Shown one piece after another: positions 7,999 through 17,316 of a DNA stretch of 64,000 nucleotides. Made by a program: the position numbers and the translations under genes. The DNA is from Amphiscolops sp. MND2022 (lineage: Eukaryota). The stretch covers positions 56,482,001 through 56,546,000 of the forward strand of contig OZ076413.1 in assembly GCA_964187785.1 (NCBI GenBank), read 5' to 3'. A model generated the notes under the pieces. The model was not told the DNA's origin and did not search any database. It was given only the letters and a program-made list of their open reading frames with translations. The first letter of the stretch is position 1. Each line of letters begins with the position of its first letter.

Positions 7999-8420
7999 TA
8001 GGGATGTACCGGAATGCGGAACTCGATTTCCAGTTCCGGCCGGAACCGGACCGGAACTTTGATTGTGCTATCCTACATTTACGTAACATGTTTTTTGCTT
8101 TGTATCGAATGTTTTATATGCGATTTCTCAGAACAAAACATCACCTCTGTCATCTGTATATTCAGAAAGGTTGTTCTCCGAATTCGGAAACATATATGAA
8201 GAAAAAAGAAGCTGACTTCTTCCAGAAACTGGCGAAAAACTTTTATTTCTTCACCATAATCCGAAATTGTTCTAGTCAATTGTATCAATTTATGAAATAA
8301 TTGAAAACAATTTGGAAACAATGCTGTTTTTAAGAGAATTTTGTTCCGGCCGGAACCAATGATGATTCCGGCCGGAACTTTTTTGAAATCCGGCCGGACC
8401 GGAATTCCGGTACATCCCTA
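7999..8420. mobile_element. hAT-type MITE
   Basis: Perfect 17-bp TIRs TAGGGATGTACCGGAAT / ATTCCGGTACATCCCTA; 8-bp TSD GTAGAAAG (7991-7998, 8421-8428); subterminal CCGG(A) repeats. Confidence 0.9.
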
Positions 8421-8678
8421 GTAGAAAGGAGTAAGCAAATCCCCTGTAGTCTTCGATTAAACCGCTTTTGATTGGGACACTTTTGACAGTGTATTTTGGG
8501 CGCTTTTGTCTGGTAACCGCTTGAAATTGGTATTTTATGGGTTTTTGAAGCTATTTATTTTTTCAAACCTGGAAATTTCTTTTAGCATCTCTCTAAAATC
8601 TGTATTGAGTTTATCTTCGTTTCCACTTTGAGGCAGCATGTTTCAGAGCTGTACTATTGACTCATTTATGCATTTCAG

Positions 8679-8865
8679 ATGGCAAAGGTTCTCTCGGTTA
8701 CGAAGCTGCAACTTGTTTTGAAGAATTGCCGCTCTATCTTCGCATTCTTCTATTTGACCCCACCACTGTGACCCTGAGACCAGAGAAGCCGGGGGCTCCC
8801 GGACGTGAACGGAAAGTGACGGGACCTCAGCAGAGTCAATATTGGTTCAAACTTCCCGCTGAATG
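8679..8865 (+). CDS. OXR1: OXR1-like exon (PLYLRILLF...QYWFKLPAEW)
   Basis: catttcag| acceptor and tg|gttagt donor. YWF.LP resembles OXR1 EYWFAVP. Phase 2 out joins G at 30059 to give Trp. Confidence 0.85.
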
Positions 8866-9469
8866 GTTAGTTGTTTTTTAAATCGTAAGTAGCTTGCTTT
8901 TGACATTGGGTCTGCTTTTTAAATTTGTTTTTCTTTTTTTTAAAAAAAAATTCTGTTTCAGCTAGATTTGAATCAATCAGTGATGTATATTTATATTCGT
9001 AATTTTATTTCAATTTAAATTTACCTTTTACTTTATAATTATAAATTGAATGATTAATTTTAAATAACGAATATAATTGTAAACTACTGATTGATACGAA
9101 GATAGCTGAAACTCAATTCAGAAGAAAAATTACAATGTCTATGTCAGAAAAACTTGAAAATGATTTTTTAAATGGAAATAATGCAAGTTGTCGTAATTTC
9201 ATATATGGAAAACAAGCCGGGAACGGCCACATTTGGCGCCCTTCTTAAAAAGAGTAGTCTCTTAAACAATCTCAGGAACAGAAACTTCCCATGAATCGCA
9301 TGGGTTCATTTAGAAACTTTCCATGAATCGCATGGTGCCAAAATGGGCAAAAAAGGACCCTTTGGGTCTGATAAATACATTTTTCTAACTGAAAATACCA
9401 CGAAAGGTACCCTGTAGTAAAATCAACAAGCCCGGAACGGCATAAGTCGGCGCTATATCTAAAGCTCAA

Positions 9470-9691
9470 TGTTGAGATTTGTTTTAGTTTGTGTAAAAAG
9501 GCTTTACAAAACTATACTTGAATTGATTGTTTGATAACCAATTGTTTTTAGAAAGCAGTTCAAGCACAGTTAACCGCCAAATTAAAGTAGTGACGAAAAG
9601 TTTGAACAAAATGTGAACAAGTCGACAAAGATAAAAAGTCACAGAAATGAACTAAATTAAATATCATATATGAATGTTTAGATTCTTTCCA
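9470..9691 (-). repeat. 3' LTR of the intact Bel/Pao element
   Basis: Direct repeat of 16369-16590; preceded on the - strand by a purine tract. Confidence 0.95.
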
Positions 9692-9725
9692 TTACTCCTC
9701 TCCTGACTTTTTTTCAGAATTGATA

Positions 9726-10581
9726 ATGTTTCTGAGAAGGACAGCCAAGTCACCGCTAGCAAGTTTGGAGGAGCTGAGAGAGGTTCTGTGCGGCTTCCCG
9801 CAAGTCAAAGCTCTGACAATTGAAGAGGTGCGACTTAGTCGTTCAGAACCAGCAATTGTGAAAGACTTTGCCATTAAAGTCGAAGGGCCCTCCAAAGATG
9901 CACTGCTGGCGGCGAAAACACTTGATGACCTGACTGATGAGTTCTTTAAGAAGAATACGAGTCCAAGACAGTCTACTCCCGATCTGCTGGTAGATGTTAT
10001 GGATGACTTCTTTATCAGTCAGGGTCAGGTGACATGCGATTGGCCCGATGCGCTGAGTCCCCTTAACTTCGGGTAATTCATTGGCACATGATTGCTTTGA
10101 ATATTGATGCTTGAAAGATTCTAGTAATATTGAACGTAATTTTTTCATTTGCAGTTATTTGCTATTCACTGGGGGAACCAGCTTTCGACCGTGGCACTTC
10201 GATCTTGAAGCATCGGAGACTGCTGGCGACATGCTCGCGACCCTTCTTTCAGGCAGGAAGATCTGGATGTTCTGCAAGATGGGTCGGTTGTCAGCATCTC
10301 TGAGGAAGGTCTGCGGGAGCCTTGAGTCGAAGACTGCCATTGCTGATACGGTCAACTTTTTGAGGGCCTTGTCAAGAACGCAACGTCAGAAGATTTTGTG
10401 GTGCGAGTTTGGGGCTGGCGAGACAGTCTACATGCCATATGGGTGCGGCCATTCTGTTGCAACTTTCTGTGAAGAAATGCCGTCCTGTATGGTGACTGTT
10501 GATGTCAGAGCAGATCTTGATCGTGCAACAGCGATCAACAACAGTGCCCACAATCTGACTGACGTAGGTCATAGACGATGA
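9726..10581 (+). CDS. JmjC-domain (cupin, 2OG/Fe(II) oxygenase) protein, 257 aa, two exons (9726-10072, 10155-10581), located inside the retrotransposon
   Basis: Removing the 82-nt GT-AG intron at 10073-10154 joins PLNFG|YLLFTGGTSFRPWHFD in frame (774 nt, ATG to TGA). Motifs: PAIVKD (N-terminal), WHFD (H-x-D), LLSGRKIW (2OG-binding Lys strand), GETVYMPYGCGHSV (distal His). AATAAA at 10609-10614. Confidence 0.88.
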
Positions 10582-11141
10582 CAAGAATAAGTGAGTAATC
10601 TATTTTTTAATAAAAATTAGCTATTGCATACTGCATTGTGGTCAAGTGTAAGGTCAGGGTAGGTACGTAAATATCAGTAGGGGCGCATCAAATTCATTTG
10701 GTAAGCGTAGCATTGAAGTTGACTTTGGGGATACACTTTATATCCAATAAGCAACAAAAATATTGAACTCGAAATGATTAACTGAGGTAAAATTTCTGTT
10801 TACGTAAATATGCTAGGATGCTAGATTAAAATGACGTGTTCAGCATATACTGAGGCATGTCAATGGGCATTGCAAGGAATGGTAACTGTCACTTGTACTG
10901 CGGGGAGACACTTTTTATTGATAAATTAAAGTGCCAGATGATAAGTAGAGGTATAATATCGATTCCATTTTCAAAGGTACACTTCACAGTGGCTATTAAA
11001 AAATATATAGCAGCTTCAGTGAACGGATCAGAACGGAGCAGCACTATAGTAGGGTTTATAGCAATAACATATGTGTCGGGGAGACACTTTTTAGCATCAA
11101 ACTATATACAAACGAAGGAAATTATGAAACATTGAATAATT

Positions 11142-14100
11142 TCAAGTGTCAGAAGAGATATTTGACTCCAGCAGGGTAGGATTTGGGACTGAATTGTCAA
11201 GTACTAGCTTTCTGAGTTTTACTACAGGGCGTATTAGGTATCCTGTGGCAGTTTTTACTTTGAAAACTCTATTAACTTCATCATTTCCGTCGTATGACTC
11301 TATGATTCTTCCAAGTTTCCAAACTAAAGGTGGTTGATTGTCTTCTGCGATAACTACCATGTCTCCAACAATCATTCTTTGGCCGTCTTTAAACCACTTT
11401 TTACGAATTTGGAGATGCACCAGGTAGTCTCTCTGCCAAGACTTCCAAAATGATCTAATTAGATTCTTAACGAGTCTGTATCTTTCTGTTAGGTTCAGTG
11501 CTTTCTCATTTTTGTATGTTGGAAGGGTCTTCAGGGGCTCTCCAATGAGAAAGTGTGCCGGCGTTAGAGGCTCTAAATCGTTTGGGCTAGTAGAAAGTGG
11601 AGTGAGCGGTCTTGAATTGAGAATTGCTTCGATTTCTGTAACATAAGTTGAGAGTTCTTCTTGCGAGAGAATTTGATTGCCAACTGTTCTCCTGAGATGA
11701 TGTTTCATTCTCTTAATGGCAGATTCCCACAGTCCACCAAAATGTGGAGTGCGAGGAGGAATCATAACCCATTCCAAACCAATGTCTTTACCAAAGTCAG
11801 TAATTGAATTTGCATGTTCGTCTTGCATATTCGTCTTCAATAGCTCTTGAATCTTCAAGATATCATTGCGAGCACCAATGAAGTTTGTGGCATTGTCTGA
11901 GTAAATGCGCCTTGGGACTCCTCTCCGTGAAACGAACCGCTTCAGGGCTGACAGACAAGCTTCTTTAGACAGAGATCCGACTATTTCTAAGTGAACTGCC
12001 TTGATTGAGAAACATACGAAAACAGCGATGTATGTCTTGTTATCTGGAATAGTGATAATTGGTCCAGCAAAGTCCAGTCCTGTATAGCTGAATGGCTTGG
12101 AAGGGGTGACCCTTTCTGTTGGAAGGTCTGCCATGACTTGATAAGGCGGTTTCAGATTGAATTTTTGACATTTTACACACAGTTTTATTACTGCATTTAC
12201 TTGATGTTTTCCCGATGTGCACCAATATTCTTGCCTCATTAAGTTGAGTGTTATCTGGCCCCCACCATGAAGGGAACCTTCATGAAAATGACGAATTACG
12301 AGGATGGTAAAATGCCCAGAGGGTGGAAGAAGAACAGGAAACTTCTTGTTTTCCGAATAATAGGATTGAGCAAGTCGGCCGCCGACTCTTATGACTTTAA
12401 ATTCTTCATCAAAGAATGGATTAAGATTCAGCAGGTTACTTTTGCAATTAATGGGACGCCTTTGGGAAAGAGCAGTGAACTCGTTGATGAAGTAAATTCT
12501 TTGCAGTTGAGAGACGATTAGAAATTTTGCTGTTTGTATTTCAGCAAATGAATAAGAACCTTTCGATATTCTTATGTCTGAATGAAGAGCTTTGAGGAAT
12601 ATTTGCTTGATGCGAAGAATGAAGCACACAGTGTTCAAAAGGCGTCGAAGTGACGAAAACCGAGAAATGTCGATTAACGGAATAGAATCTAATGACAAAT
12701 TAGTTCCAGTTAAAGAACTTACAGCCTCTGTATTCGAAACAACTTCTTTTGTGATTCGTGTTTCAGGGGGTTCTGTAGTGTCTAGGGGAAGCTTGGGCCA
12801 TTCTGAATGCTGTTTCATTAACCACGAAGGACCATACCACCACAGAGAGGATTTTTTGAGGTCGACTGGAGACATGCCTCTGGATGGCAGATCGGCTGGA
12901 TTAGAAGTGGTTGGGACATGGTTCCATTTGTCTGGAGAAATGCTGTCTTGTATGATGGCTACACGGTTTGCAACAAAAGTGGTCCACTTTCGGGGAGGCT
13001 TAGCAATCCACTGGAGTACAATAGTAGAGTCCGACCAAGCGAAAACTTCATAGTTTTGAAATTTCGTGAGATGAAGCAATTCTTCAATAATCTTGATTAA
13101 CTTGCAGCCAAGGTGGGCAGCACATAATTCCAGTCTGGGAAGCGAGATCTGCTTGATAGGGGCAATACGACTTTTTGAAGCTAGAAGGCGAGTAGTTACA
13201 ACCCCATTTTCGTCAACAAATCTAGAATAGACAGCTGCGGCATATGCTGATTCAGATGCATCAGTAAAAAGGTGAAGTTGGAAACTTTGGTTTTTTCCAG
13301 GGGACAAAAGACATCTGGGAAGAGCAAGGTCATTGAGGCTTGGTAGCTGTTCACGCAGTGTCATCCATTGATCTTGGATGTGCGGTGGAAGAAGTTCATC
13401 CCATTGAATTCCAGTCGTCCAAATTTCCTGCATTAGTACCTTGTACCTGGTAATGATTGGAGCGAGCCAACCCAGTGGATCAAAGAGCTTGGACAAGTCG
13501 GATAAAAATGTCCGCTTTGTATAGGCAGTCAATTCAAGAAGAAGGACTTCGAAGGTGAAAACATCCAGATTGGGCTTCCATTTGACACCGAGTGTTTTTA
13601 TTTGATAATCATTATCCAAAATTTTGTCTTTCTCAGCAGTTTCGCGAAGATGTGTTGGCAGATCCAAAGTGATTTCTGGATCACTTGATGTCCACTTTCG
13701 TAATTCAAACCCATGTTTCCGCAGTTCTTCGGAAACACCGAGCAGTAGAAGCTTGGCCTCAGCAGTGGAAGAAGCACCACTTAAGAAATCATCAACGTAG
13801 AAATCGTTTTGAATGGACGACACAAAAAGTGTCTCCCCACATAGCTCGGCAACTTGTTTGAGGCATCTGGTGGCGTGGAAGGCTGAGGAGGCTATTCCGT
13901 ACGTGACACGGGTCATACGAAGGTGCTGTAAAGGTTCGGTCGGATTATCTCGCCATAAGATACGATGAAAATCACGATCGTTTGTATCTAGACCAACTTG
14001 TCTATACATTTTAGCCACATCTCCACTGATGGCGACTCTGTGGAATCGGAATCGCATTAATGTTGAGAATAAATCCGGCTGTATAGTACTGCCAACCATC

Positions 14101-16328
14101 AGGGACTCATTCAATGAAATTCCACTTTGAGACTTTGCGGATCCGTCAAACACAACGCGTAGTTTCGTGGTTGTTGAATCTTCCTTAATTACGCTGTGAT
14201 GAGGCAGATAGAAGACTTGGTCACATGGTTTTTCAAGGTCAGCATTGGGAACAAGCTCCAAATGACCGAGGTCACGGAATTCTTGGATAAATTCTTTGTA
14301 TTTTGTCTTGGTATTTGGCATTGATTGCAATCGTTTTTCTAGTGAGAAAAATCGTCTTTGAGCTTGCTGAAGACTTTCGCCTAGTTTTGGAGATTCTTTC
14401 TTAAATGGCAGTTTTACAATGAATCGGCCATTGTCGTCTTGAGTAGTGGTAGCGCGGAAATGCTCTTCGCATGCGATTTCTTCTTTAGTGAGTTTTGATT
14501 GGGTCGGAATTTGTTCTAGTTCCCAAAAATTTTTCAAATTAAATTCTGAAGTGACATGATAGGATTGCGTGGGATGATTGATTCTGGACGAAGTTTGTCC
14601 TGATGCTACCCAACCAAACTCAGTTTTACGAAAGTATAGGCCATTGCTAGTTTTGATTTTTTCATCCAATACAACATCTTCGAAAATATCTGCTCCTAAG
14701 ATCAGATCAATCTCACGTGGATTTAAGTAGTCTGTGTCAGCCAAAGGACTTACTTCAGGTGGTACAACTATCCGTTCTGGATTTTGCACAGAGGGCATGG
14801 TTGAAGCTAGCCTTGGCAAGATGAATGCTCTAACATTGAAAATTTTGTTGGAATCAATAGTTGATTTGATTTGAAATTGAGTTGAGGCAGTTGGAGTTCT
14901 TTGTTTTCTATCTCCAATTCCAGTTAGATGGAGCATTTGCTTTTTCCTCTTCAAGTTGAGTAATTGAGCGCAACTTTCAGTGATAAAAGAGCTCTGAGAA
15001 CCACTATCCAAAAGGGCTCTGCATGAGATGATAGAGTTGTCCGATGAAATGACGTTGACCATAGCGGTAGGAAGAAGTGTACAAAAACTGTCTCCCCACT
15101 TCGTGGAAAGGTTACTTTGAACCTTTTCGCTTGTTTTACGAATGGAATCATCATGGAGCATGGTATGATGCTTTTTCTGACATTTCTGACAAGTATTTTT
15201 GGACTTGCAATCTTTCGTTTGGTGACCAAGACGTAAGCAATTGAAGCAAACTTTCAAAATTTTGACTTTATCTCGTTTTTCTGTGATAGATAGCTGTTTG
15301 AAATGATCACACATGAAGAGTTTGTGAGATGCCTTGCATTGAGGACAGCTTTGAATGCCACTGTGGTAATTTTGGACCGGTTTTTCTTGTGAAGTTTTGT
15401 CTTGATTTGAATTTCTTGTGGACTTACCAGTCGCTTCAAGGGCATTTGCTCGTGCCTCCAAAAATGTTTTGAATTGATTCATTGTCTGGATTTCATCTCC
15501 AGTTGAATTAAGCTCCCATTGACGTCGTGTAGGGTAGTCTAATTTCTGGGATAGAACTCTGACTAAGAAACAGCTGAGTTGATCTTCTTCCTTTACAAGT
15601 TCGTTCAAAGCCATTGTGTTTTCCACAAAACAATTGACTAAGCTACGAATGCCTTCTGCAGACTCTTGATTCAAGGGCTTGAAATTGAGAATAGCATCGA
15701 TATGAGCTCGTGAAATCAGGCGTTTGTTTTCATATCTTTCCTTCAGGAGTTTCACTGCGACTTTGTAATTTGCACTTGTGATTGGTAAATGGGATAAAAG
15801 TTTGGCTGGCTCACCTTTTAAACTTGATTTGAGATAGTGGAGTTTTTGAATCTCTGGCAATCCATCGTTCGAGTCAACTGATCCATTGAAAAGGTCAAAG
15901 AAGGGTGTCCAATTCTGATAATTGCCATCGAACTTTGGTAGATCTAGTTTGGGTAATTTCAAGTGTGATGAAACTCCAACTGAATGATTGGATTCACTCC
16001 CTTCGTTTTGTGTTTGGTTGAAGCTATCGATGATGTGTTCCAATTGCTTCTTCAATTTCCTGAATTCGAAGTCTTTTTTATCAATTAGCTCTAATTCAGC
16101 TTCAATTTCATTTTCATCGGCCTGTTGGATGATTTCATCGTTGAGAGTGTTAATGAGACTTGTTTTTTCGGTGATGCTTTCAAGTACTGCTTTAACTGTA
16201 GTGAGATGGTCAACTGTGACATCGCTTGTTGATAATTCCAAAATTGGAGTAACTTGCTTTGAACTTCTTGTGATGGATGCGAATTGATAGCCACGCTTCT
16301 TTTTAAGGTCGGCTAAATTCTGTGACAT
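11142..16328 (-). CDS. Bel/Pao Gag-Pol polyprotein (about 1728 aa from the first ATG)
   Basis: Gag LKLPKLDLPKFDG; three Cys/His knuckles (CPQCKASH, CFNCLRLGH, CQKCQKKHH); protease ALLDSGSQSSF; RT YLPHH, DVAKMYRQ, FYVDDFLSG; RNase H FTDASESAY; integrase HHCC, GLDFAGP, SDNATNF, GGLWE; C-terminal WKLGRI...RPVVKL. Confidence 0.97.
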   Translation of the reverse strand: MSQNLADLKKKRGYQFASITRSSKQVTPILELSTSDVTVDHLTTVKAVLESITEKTSLINTLNDEIIQQADENEIEAELELIDKKDFEFRKLKKQLEHIIDSFNQTQNEGSESNHSVGVSSHLKLPKLDLPKFDGNYQNWTPFFDLFNGSVDSNDGLPEIQKLHYLKSSLKGEPAKLLSHLPITSANYKVAVKLLKERYENKRLISRAHIDAILNFKPLNQESAEGIRSLVNCFVENTMALNELVKEEDQLSCFLVRVLSQKLDYPTRRQWELNSTGDEIQTMNQFKTFLEARANALEATGKSTRNSNQDKTSQEKPVQNYHSGIQSCPQCKASHKLFMCDHFKQLSITEKRDKVKILKVCFNCLRLGHQTKDCKSKNTCQKCQKKHHTMLHDDSIRKTSEKVQSNLSTKWGDSFCTLLPTAMVNVISSDNSIISCRALLDSGSQSSFITESCAQLLNLKRKKQMLHLTGIGDRKQRTPTASTQFQIKSTIDSNKIFNVRAFILPRLASTMPSVQNPERIVVPPEVSPLADTDYLNPREIDLILGADIFEDVVLDEKIKTSNGLYFRKTEFGWVASGQTSSRINHPTQSYHVTSEFNLKNFWELEQIPTQSKLTKEEIACEEHFRATTTQDDNGRFIVKLPFKKESPKLGESLQQAQRRFFSLEKRLQSMPNTKTKYKEFIQEFRDLGHLELVPNADLEKPCDQVFYLPHHSVIKEDSTTTKLRVVFDGSAKSQSGISLNESLMVGSTIQPDLFSTLMRFRFHRVAISGDVAKMYRQVGLDTNDRDFHRILWRDNPTEPLQHLRMTRVTYGIASSAFHATRCLKQVAELCGETLFVSSIQNDFYVDDFLSGASSTAEAKLLLLGVSEELRKHGFELRKWTSSDPEITLDLPTHLRETAEKDKILDNDYQIKTLGVKWKPNLDVFTFEVLLLELTAYTKRTFLSDLSKLFDPLGWLAPIITRYKVLMQEIWTTGIQWDELLPPHIQDQWMTLREQLPSLNDLALPRCLLSPGKNQSFQLHLFTDASESAYAAAVYSRFVDENGVVTTRLLASKSRIAPIKQISLPRLELCAAHLGCKLIKIIEELLHLTKFQNYEVFAWSDSTIVLQWIAKPPRKWTTFVANRVAIIQDSISPDKWNHVPTTSNPADLPSRGMSPVDLKKSSLWWYGPSWLMKQHSEWPKLPLDTTEPPETRITKEVVSNTEAVSSLTGTNLSLDSIPLIDISRFSSLRRLLNTVCFILRIKQIFLKALHSDIRISKGSYSFAEIQTAKFLIVSQLQRIYFINEFTALSQRRPINCKSNLLNLNPFFDEEFKVIRVGGRLAQSYYSENKKFPVLLPPSGHFTILVIRHFHEGSLHGGGQITLNLMRQEYWCTSGKHQVNAVIKLCVKCQKFNLKPPYQVMADLPTERVTPSKPFSYTGLDFAGPIITIPDNKTYIAVFVCFSIKAVHLEIVGSLSKEACLSALKRFVSRRGVPRRIYSDNATNFIGARNDILKIQELLKTNMQDEHANSITDFGKDIGLEWVMIPPRTPHFGGLWESAIKRMKHHLRRTVGNQILSQEELSTYVTEIEAILNSRPLTPLSTSPNDLEPLTPAHFLIGEPLKTLPTYKNEKALNLTERYRLVKNLIRSFWKSWQRDYLVHLQIRKKWFKDGQRMIVGDMVVIAEDNQPPLVWKLGRIIESYDGNDEVNRVFKVKTATGYLIRPVVKLRKLVLDNSVPNPTLLESNISSDT

Positions 16329-16345
16329 TTTTGAACTGATAGTTC

Positions 16346-16363
16346 CTGGGTCTCGCGGCACCA
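16346..16363 (-). promoter_or_regulatory. Primer-binding site (TGGTGCCGCGAGACCCAG)
   Basis: Starts with TGG 5 nt after the 5' LTR. TGGTGCCG is complementary to the 3' ends of tRNA-His/Phe-type primers; the exact tRNA was not determined. Confidence 0.7.
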
Positions 16364-16368
16364 ATAAA

Positions 16369-16590
16369 TGTTGAGATTTGTTTTAGTTTGTGTAAAAAGG
16401 CTTTACAAAACTATACTTGAATTGATTGTTTGATAACCAATTGTTTTTAGAAAGCAGTTCAAGCACAGTTAACCGCCAAATTAAAGTAGTGACGAAAAGT
16501 TTGAACAAAATGTGAACAAGTCGACAAAGATAAAAAGTCACAGAAATGAACTAAATTAAATATCATATATGAATGTTTAGATTCTTTCCA
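16369..16590 (-). repeat. 5' LTR of the intact Bel/Pao element
   Basis: Direct repeat of 9470-9691; followed on the - strand by TTTAT and the PBS. Confidence 0.95.
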
Positions 16591-17316
16591 CTCAAAAATA
16601 GCAAAAGTACTTCAAAGTGTCGAGTATTTTTTACAGTAACCGAAAAACCCAAAAGCTGGACTGAATTGGCGCGCTAAAAGGGGGACCCTGTAGGATTTTT
16701 TAACATTTCTGTTGCAAAACCGAAAAATTGAAGGGGACCTTTTTGAAGTCATTAAAAAATTTCGAAAAAAAAGTCTCACCTTGCCGAAAAAAACAAAGGG
16801 GGAGCTTTTAGTCTAGCCCGGTATTGAATGCTACGCGGGAAAAAGAAAAATCTTTTTGTTTCAGTTCTCTAGGCCAAATGGTTCAATTTAACAGCATAAA
16901 TTTTCGTAGAACTTTGTAGAACTACTTTGGTCAGTTCGTGTGGATTGAAAAGAAGTCACTATAAAAGTTGTGTTTCACTTCATGAAGCGCCGGCTAAAAA
17001 TCACTGAAAAAACTCGCGCAATTCCAAAACATCCTCATAATCTCGGCTCGTTTTTATGAATACTTCAGTACTATCAGCAAGCTTTTACAAAAAATGTCCA
17101 CTTGGAACAAGTGGTTTTGAAGCAACCCTTTGAGTGATCATCAATATGATATTGTTTTAAAGTGGCTCAAAGTGGTTTTCCTCGGCGAAAGCGTTTAGGT
17201 TCAATTCATTTATCGATATTTTATTTCACACAATGACAAAATAATGGATGAAATCTTAATTTGAGGAGAAATAATTCAATCTTTTCCCATTTTCGTTTTC
17301 TCTCTTCAGTTGGTTG

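Follow-up and report, generated by a model that had tools for sequence, protein, structure and literature searches.

An antisense, intron-bearing gene for a predicted JmjC-type enzyme as cargo of a Bel/Pao retrotransposon in Amphiscolops sp.

To which genome does an intron-containing gene belong when it lies, in antisense, inside a retrotransposon, and what might its product do there? Long terminal repeat (LTR) retrotransposons are generally held to carry only gag, pol and sometimes env and, to our knowledge, conserved extra enzymes are rare among them. The window analysed here, a 64,000-nt stretch of Amphiscolops sp. MND2022 (contig OZ076413.1, positions 56,482,001-56,546,000), contains on its minus strand a Bel/Pao LTR retrotransposon, and a plus-strand gene in two predicted exons sits between the pol stop and the 3′ LTR of this element. 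The gene runs antisense to gag-pol, and 34 nt separate its ATG from the inner edge of the LTR. This work showed that the gene is cargo of the element, copied along with it. Its predicted product is a divergent JmjC-type protein, and the gene is probably an element-encoded accessory enzyme. The parts of the gene are as follows.

9726-10072, plus strand: exon 1, 115 codons and 2 nt, an open frame starting with the ATG at 9726-9728 and coding for the N-terminal half of the protein
10073-10154, plus strand: predicted intron, GT..AG, 82 nt, phase 2, with a T-rich 3′ end; read directly and predicted from restoration of the frame
10155-10581, plus strand: exon 2, by translation, coding for the predicted double-stranded beta-helix core and closed by TGA at 10579-10581
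10195-10203, plus strand: HFD, predicted Fe(II) ligands His130 (10195-10197) and Asp132 (10201-10203), by alignment to FHID of PHF8
10258-10260, plus strand: Lys151 of GRKIW, predicted 2-oxoglutarate (2OG)-binding lysine, by alignment to the lysine of PHF8 GEKIF
10450-10452, plus strand: His215 of GHSV, predicted distal Fe(II) ligand, by alignment to the histidine of PHF8 GWIHAV
10609-10614, plus strand: AATAAA, candidate polyadenylation signal, read directly

Removal of the predicted intron joins GG and T into a glycine codon followed by 141 further codons, which gives a coding sequence of 771 nt and 257 amino acids with zero internal stops; without splicing, the exon-1 frame ends at the stop codon 10074-10076. 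A sequence-only reading of this DNA had proposed this architecture, with an ATG at 9726, an in-frame GT-AG intron at 10073-10154, a stop codon, AATAAA and the HFD, GRKIW and GHSV motifs, and all of it was confirmed by reading and translation, with minor refinements. The element around the gene was delimited as follows.

9465-9469, no strand: left target-site duplication CTCAA, read directly, identical to the pentamer at 16591-16595
9470-9691, minus strand: 3′ LTR, 222 bp, TG..CA, 100% identical to 16369-16590
9692-9716, minus strand: putative polypurine tract region adjoining the 3′ LTR, purine-rich on the minus strand, read directly
11142-16364, minus strand: gag-pol open frame, 1740 codons, assigned with Pfam
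16346-16363, minus strand: candidate primer-binding site TGGTGCCGCGAGACCCAG, starting with TGG, 5 nt inside the 5′ LTR, read directly
16369-16590, minus strand: 5′ LTR, 222 bp, TG..CA, 100% identical to the 3′ LTR
16591-16595, no strand: right target-site duplication CTCAA, read directly

A direct-repeat search found a single LTR pair around the gene, 100% identical, and CTCAA stands on both flanks, so that the earlier description of an element bounded by identical LTRs and a CTCAA duplication stands. In gag-pol, Pfam recognised DUF1759 (5.7e-38), Peptidase_A17 (5e-50) and DUF5641 (1.2e-26), together with a zinc knuckle, an aspartic protease, RVT_1 and Integrase_H2C2. The element thus combines TG..CA LTRs, a short target-site duplication, a candidate primer-binding site and polypurine tract, and the domain set of Pao-type gag-pol, as is characteristic of Bel/Pao elements. 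Since its LTRs are identical and its gag-pol frame is open, it is an intact Bel/Pao LTR retrotransposon and a very recent insertion. Contigs from four DNA runs (one sample) part from the element exactly at positions 9470 and 9689-9691, where unrelated sequence begins. These break points are the ends of the element at other insertion sites, the pattern expected of a multi-copy element. The TGGTGCCGCGAGACCCAG sequence was also found at the loose ends of LTR-containing contigs from these runs.

The copy number of the element made it possible to follow the gene from one insertion to another. A DNA search with the 1450-bp stretch from pol to the LTR found about 30 places in the 1.07-Gb genome, 16 of which are 99-100% identical to it and a further group 91-96% identical. 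The ATG, the GT-AG pair, the frame and the stop codon were all kept in 12 of the 15 near-identical full-length copies (99-100%), against only one of nine older copies, and the GT and AG of the intron were retained in 23 of the 24 copies that span it. Two copies of this family (family 1) lie 6.8 kb apart (C12:15656708/15663541). The two-exon frame is not a product of chance, since besides these 12 copies it was kept in two further lineages, described below, with 62% and 44% identity in exon 2. The proposal that the gene is element cargo and not host sequence is therefore borne out: the gene lies within the LTRs and the target-site duplication, recurs at about 30 unrelated places and is found in divergent Bel/Pao families. 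The cassette, in other words, travels with the element, in the copies of this family, in a second family and among Bel/Pao elements more widely.

The second family (L037, hereafter family 2) was reached through weak DNA matches in the same genome and is also present in an ENA assembly. Its elements are arranged head to tail with a period of 6452 bp (element-LTR-element; C6:1782866/1789318, L035 and L036), and the spacing in that ENA assembly matches the one on chromosome 6. They have LTRs of 261 bp, and the gene is again placed directly inside the 3′ LTR and antisense to gag-pol. Protein identity between families 1 and 2 is 53% for exon 1, 62% for exon 2 and 56% for gag-pol. The family-2 intron shares codon and phase with that of the window, but has a length of 71 nt and an unrelated sequence. 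A CTCCTCTCC block next to the LTR in family 2 matches the polypurine tract region of the window; the spacer and the LTRs are essentially unalignable between the two families.

Selection on the gene was evaluated from the ratio of nonsynonymous to synonymous differences per site (pN/pS). Between families 1 and 2, the synonymous differences being saturated (pS 0.70-0.84), this ratio is 0.40 in each of the two exons, against 0.37 in gag-pol. Between the young and the older subfamily it is 0.21-0.32, and comparisons within the older, dead copies give about 1. These ratios indicate that purifying selection on the gene has been as strong as on gag-pol, at least since the split of the two families. 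They describe selection on the replicating lineage followed by neutral decay after insertion, as is usual for transposons. The suggestion that the gene is not decaying neutrally is in line with this: along active lineages, pN/pS is 0.2-0.4, as in gag-pol, and only dead insertions approach 1.

Relatives of the gene at 20-44% identity adjoin or sit inside Bel/Pao elements, on metagenome scaffolds and at other loci of this species' assembly, and all nine contexts examined, marine metagenomes included, proved to be Bel/Pao and none Gypsy. The following loci illustrate this.

L039, metagenome scaffold: 44% identity in exon 2 and 40% in exon 1; convergent with a degraded Pao pol; intron at the same site, 60 nt, in frame
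L040, NCBI assembly contig: gene flanked by a pol C-terminus on one side and a gag N-terminus on the other
L046, Tara scaffold: complete Pao element, its LTRs 851 bp long; the gene straddles the junction of leader and 5′ LTR, its C-terminal half thus being present in both LTRs
L049, this species' assembly: broken copy that lacks the intron, directly inside the 3′ LTR (9844-10780)
L050-L055, this genome: loci from the protein search, convergent with Pao pol C-termini
L056, this species' assembly: close to a Pao gag

In L046, both LTRs (1111-1961 and 8273-9123) contain the C-terminal half of the gene and a 64-codon open reading frame (ORF), and at the 3′ LTR the reading frame of the half-gene continues into unrelated flanking sequence, in which a GDSxxxG-like motif occurs. 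Across nine elements, the pairwise identity of the pol C-terminus correlates with that of the JmjC domain (r 0.82). Searched with the family profile, the 1.07-Gb genome yielded at least 666 candidates; scores were obtained for 150 of these, each with E < 1e-25, and open frames of 200-328 codons are common among them. The candidate frames fall genome-wide into size classes of about 203, 210, 274, 309 and 327 codons, and on C4 three JmjC-like frames recur every 1048 bp (20543674/20544722/20545770). Outside this genome, a profile of the two exon-2 sequences (families 1 and 2) compared with 1.84 billion representative proteins found 25 matches, all unnamed and of 116-293 amino acids. No canonical JmjC protein was among those 25, and a host parent gene was not identified from them; a word-index homology search returned nothing beyond this species' own copies and family 2.

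The protein itself was assigned from several lines of comparison, in which the two exon products were searched separately, as unaltered translations of the window. In an alignment of 21 members, D16 and K35 of exon 2 are the sole invariant residues, and H14, G33, W37, P94, H99 and V101 are at least 90% conserved, so that the best-conserved positions include the proposed metal triad and the cofactor lysine. The profile of these 21 members, compared with solved structures, matched PHF8 (8e-6), KDM7A (1e-4), ceKDM7A of C. elegans (3.6e-4) and PHF2 (0.009), and reached JMJD7, JMJD6 and KDM2A only at E 0.09-0.3. In the profile alignment to PHF8, FHxD corresponds to FHID, GRKLW to GEKIF and HSV to HAV; the lysine of GEKIF binds 2OG in PHF8. 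Eight of the 21 members individually match the JmjC, Cupin_8 or JmjC_2 models of Pfam, the best at E 2e-5 and 7.7e-6, and the neighbours found with a language model are JmjC/Cupin_8 clusters. The AlphaFold2 model of exon 2 (predicted local distance difference test 89.6) gave, with Foldseek, 50 top matches, every one a JmjC/2OG oxygenase, with PHF8 and KDM7A first, then JMJD6 and PHF2. A double-stranded beta-helix core with a JmjC-type N-terminal extension was thus predicted, and the window protein has the HxD...H triad and the 2OG lysine. Taken together, these alignments and models establish the protein as a divergent member of the JmjC family of enzymes at the level of the superfamily.

Exon 1 alone gave no Pfam match, and a profile-profile comparison with the N-terminal halves of the intronless relatives yielded a collinear match that was no more than weak (E 0.009, probability 4%); homology to these N-termini is suggested mainly by the full-length alignment and by position. 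The first histidine of the HxD motif is lost in a few family members (FQQD in P0022, FRVD in P0016), which may be pseudo-enzymes or products of decay; at least one of them is broken.

How an intron may be kept through reverse transcription is explained by its orientation: in the genomic sense RNA it reads CT..AC and is unspliceable. The same logic is used in antisense-intron retrotransposition reporters. The sequence-only reading had advanced this argument, which is sound and agrees with the common intron site and phase in three lineages (82 nt in the window, 71 nt in L037 and 60 nt in L039). The intron would be removed only from the antisense mRNA, and the genomic RNA would copy it into every new insertion. 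The gene itself would be transcribed independently, from the inner edge of the 3′ LTR or from adjoining sequence, heading away from the LTR. Contigs of the four DNA runs cross the intron unspliced and without joints, which has no bearing on expression. The clade of P0016, P0018 and P0010, which includes L049, is without an intron at the site used by families 1 and 2 and by L039, and an intron was thus gained or lost within the history of the cargo.

Two explanations would make the gene irrelevant to the element. It might be a host gene beside or into which the element happened to insert, for which nothing speaks beyond the bare possibility that exists for any single copy; its position within the target-site duplication, flanked by the pol stop and the 3′ LTR, and its presence with the element at about 30 unrelated places already refute this explanation, whose probability we regard as negligible. 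It might also be a passenger, a captured fragment of a host gene that hitch-hikes and decays without benefit to the element. Most old copies are indeed broken, and no host parent gene was found in homology searches. However, breakage is the normal fate of dead insertions, in which pN/pS is about 1, and the gene was retained across families whose gag-pol is 56% identical and in relatives at 20-44%, always with Bel/Pao elements. Its pN/pS equals that of gag-pol while the non-coding parts are unalignable, which already contradicts a passenger status; we hold this to be very improbable.

From a functional point of view, we favour, with somewhat better than even confidence, an accessory gene of a recently active Bel/Pao element, encoding a JmjC-fold enzyme that helps this element. 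The protein is most likely an active Fe(II)/2OG oxygenase, which would aid the element. A histone lysine demethylase is the leading guess, since PHF8 and KDM7 are the nearest sequence relatives: like these, the enzyme would remove repressive histone lysine methylation, and the loss of such methylation would weaken the heterochromatin silencing of the element. Taken alone, this mechanism is plausible, though its probability falls a little short of one half. The broader proposal is more tentative still: a diversified clade of animal Bel/Pao elements may encode, in an antisense, intron-bearing, LTR-adjacent gene, its own demethylase that erases H3K9me2/1 or H4K20me1 deposited by small-RNA-guided silencing. 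Alternatively, a functional JmjC oxygenase could be a protein or RNA hydroxylase of the FIH, JMJD5, JMJD6 or TYW5 type, acting on a host factor, Gag, integrase or RNA. Structure comparison ties demethylases with hydroxylases, but the sole significant profile matches in the PDB belong to the PHF8/KDM7/PHF2 group; a hydroxylase is somewhat doubtful in itself and nearly as likely as a demethylase. It is, by analogy with HBZ and the plant antisense ORFs, also conceivable that the antisense transcript or a non-catalytic protein has a regulatory role, for instance by limiting the element's own copy number or by interfering with sense transcription. ORFs that lie in antisense between pol and the 3′ LTR, as well as antisense promoters in 3′ LTRs, are known, with roles that are regulatory or unknown (PMC7264820). 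Selection nevertheless acts on the amino-acid sequence (pN/pS 0.2-0.4), and conservation is strongest at the metal and cofactor ligands, which a role at the RNA level or as a scaffold does not predict, so that we regard this explanation as improbable.

Several observations weigh against an accessory enzyme, and against a demethylase in particular. Compared as a single sequence, exon 2 reaches only 16.1 bits against Pfam JmjC (PF02373; threshold 24, E 0.016). The earlier assignment to JmjC holds nonetheless, as the family profile matches PHF8 and KDM7A with the triad and the lysine aligned, and the predicted fold agrees. Only the exon-2 half was folded, the full-length model being that of a relative at 33% identity. 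Chromatin readers such as PHD or CXXC are missing from the protein, as is a JHD domain, and it thus offers no evident means of targeting to histones. Before the first histidine, it has an arginine (SFRPWH) where PHF8 has a threonine (SYTDFH), and cofactor contacts may differ. Among sequencing runs, the sequence was found in four DNA runs and in no RNA run, and the transcript, its start, its splice and the protein are thus predictions. Finally, an antisense gene could feed double-stranded RNA silencing and so harm the element.

Further signals around the accessory gene were noted, two of them at its borders and one in the spacer.

9711-9717, plus strand: TTTTCAG, ending 8 nt upstream of the ATG, read directly
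10591-10596, plus strand: GTGAGT, donor-like hexamer 9 nt past the stop codon, read directly
10727-11093, plus strand: spacer separating the JmjC-like gene from pol; a 16-nt motif (GGGGAGACACTTTTTA-like) occurs in it three times, 175-176 bp apart

In four lineages, TTTTCAG precedes the ATG by 6-8 nt (window 9711-9717, L037 9574-9580, L039 153-159 and L049 9831-9837), although their proteins are only 26-62% identical; an alignment of the DNA upstream of the ATG in three lineages was uninformative except for TTTTCAG. The motif may be an initiator-like start (TCAGAT/TCAGTT) or the 3′ splice acceptor of an unseen upstream exon. Donor-like hexamers were also found 2 nt past the stop in L037 (GTGAGT, 10453-10458) and just upstream of the stop in L039 (GTAAAA, about 1000-1005), which suggests an intron in the 3′ untranslated region or an alternative C-terminal exon. 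AATAAA is not conserved in family 2.

The GGGGAGACACTTTTTA-like motif occurs on the plus strand at 10727-10742, 10902-10917 and 11078-11093, and inverted inside gag-pol, on the minus strand, at 13823-13838 and 15082-15097, which makes five occurrences in the window where 0.07 would be expected. A variant of the motif, GGGGTGCACTTTTTAT, is arranged in the same way in family 2 (L037 10595 and 10770, plus strand; 13531 and 14799, minus strand). Since the gag-pol of this family is only 56% identical, the comparison identifies the motif as a conserved, predicted cis element. At 11073-11093, one copy of the motif forms a short hairpin with a run of T after it. Just outside the 3′ LTR, at 9230-9460, lie short repeated blocks, GCCCGGAACGGC and CCATGAATCGCATGG, each present twice. 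Contig depth in the DNA runs is extremely high in the bin 9400-9520 beside the 3′ LTR, and this suggests that another very abundant repeat adjoins the insertion site.

Compared with known enzymes, the JmjC-like protein is only 10-19% identical to KDM7/PHF8/PHF2 and KDM2. It is limited to the catalytic core, ending about 40 residues past the distal histidine, is devoid of the PHD finger, CXXC, F-box and JHD domains, and is encoded by a retrotransposon instead of a host locus. It was not filed as a member of KDM7, since Pfam shows no domain besides JmjC and the C-terminus is short. The small JmjC hydroxylases FIH, JMJD5, JMJD6, JMJD7 and TYW5 are host genes with known protein or tRNA substrates, and none gave a significant profile match (E 0.09 or worse). 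VANC of the Arabidopsis VANDAL elements and the TET/JBP genes found with fungal KDZ transposons are, as proposed here, factors of mobile elements that act on host epigenetic marks, but they belong to DNA transposons and to other protein families with other targets. JmjC or cupin proteins of parasitic genomes (Gaeavirus, mimivirus L613 and cyanophage P-TIM40) gave a weak structural match, with template modelling (TM) scores of 0.3-0.4. These share the JmjC fold, but come from large DNA viruses and phages, with no retroelement among them.

The closest precedents are found in LTR elements. An ORF for AlkB, another 2OG oxygenase, was fixed in Ty3/Gypsy elements of Phalaenopsis and proposed to counter host surveillance (PMC9289625). 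Both cases involve a lineage of LTR retrotransposons with a fixed, extra Fe/2OG oxygenase gene; that of Phalaenopsis is, however, an m6A (N6-methyladenosine) RNA demethylase, recent and confined to one lineage of plant Gypsy elements, whereas the gene described here is of JmjC type, antisense, intron-bearing, old and diversified among animal Bel/Pao elements. As regards position, antisense additional ORFs (aORFs) between pol and the 3′ LTR were described in maize Grande (gene23), rice RIRE2 and Silene Retand, with no recognisable similarity to known proteins, and the antisense gene of human T-cell leukaemia virus type 1 (HTLV-1) is driven from the 3′ LTR (PMC7264820). Our gene has the location between pol and the 3′ LTR, the antisense orientation and the presence in most family copies that define the aORF-3R class (PMC7264820), and for it, as for the plant aORFs, an antisense transcription of its own is proposed; unlike them, it has an identifiable enzyme fold with conserved catalytic residues. 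The earlier remark that JmjC cargo is not known to have been described for Bel/Pao elements agrees with a full-text literature search, which found no JmjC gene in any LTR retrotransposon, an absence of evidence only, as many subscription journals lie outside its coverage. Accessory antisense ORFs and oxygenase cargo in retroelements are thus the known precedents, and JmjC cargo in an LTR element appears to be new.

As a candidate modifier of chromatin or proteins that is encoded by an element in animals, this gene can be tested directly, and it is a natural example of an intron that survives reverse transcription through its antisense orientation. It also implies that the annotations of some invertebrates may list hundreds of "JmjC genes" that are transposon cargo. 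If the enzyme were indeed a demethylase, it would represent a transposon-encoded enzymatic counter-measure to host heterochromatin silencing, multiplied into hundreds of gene copies within a single genome.

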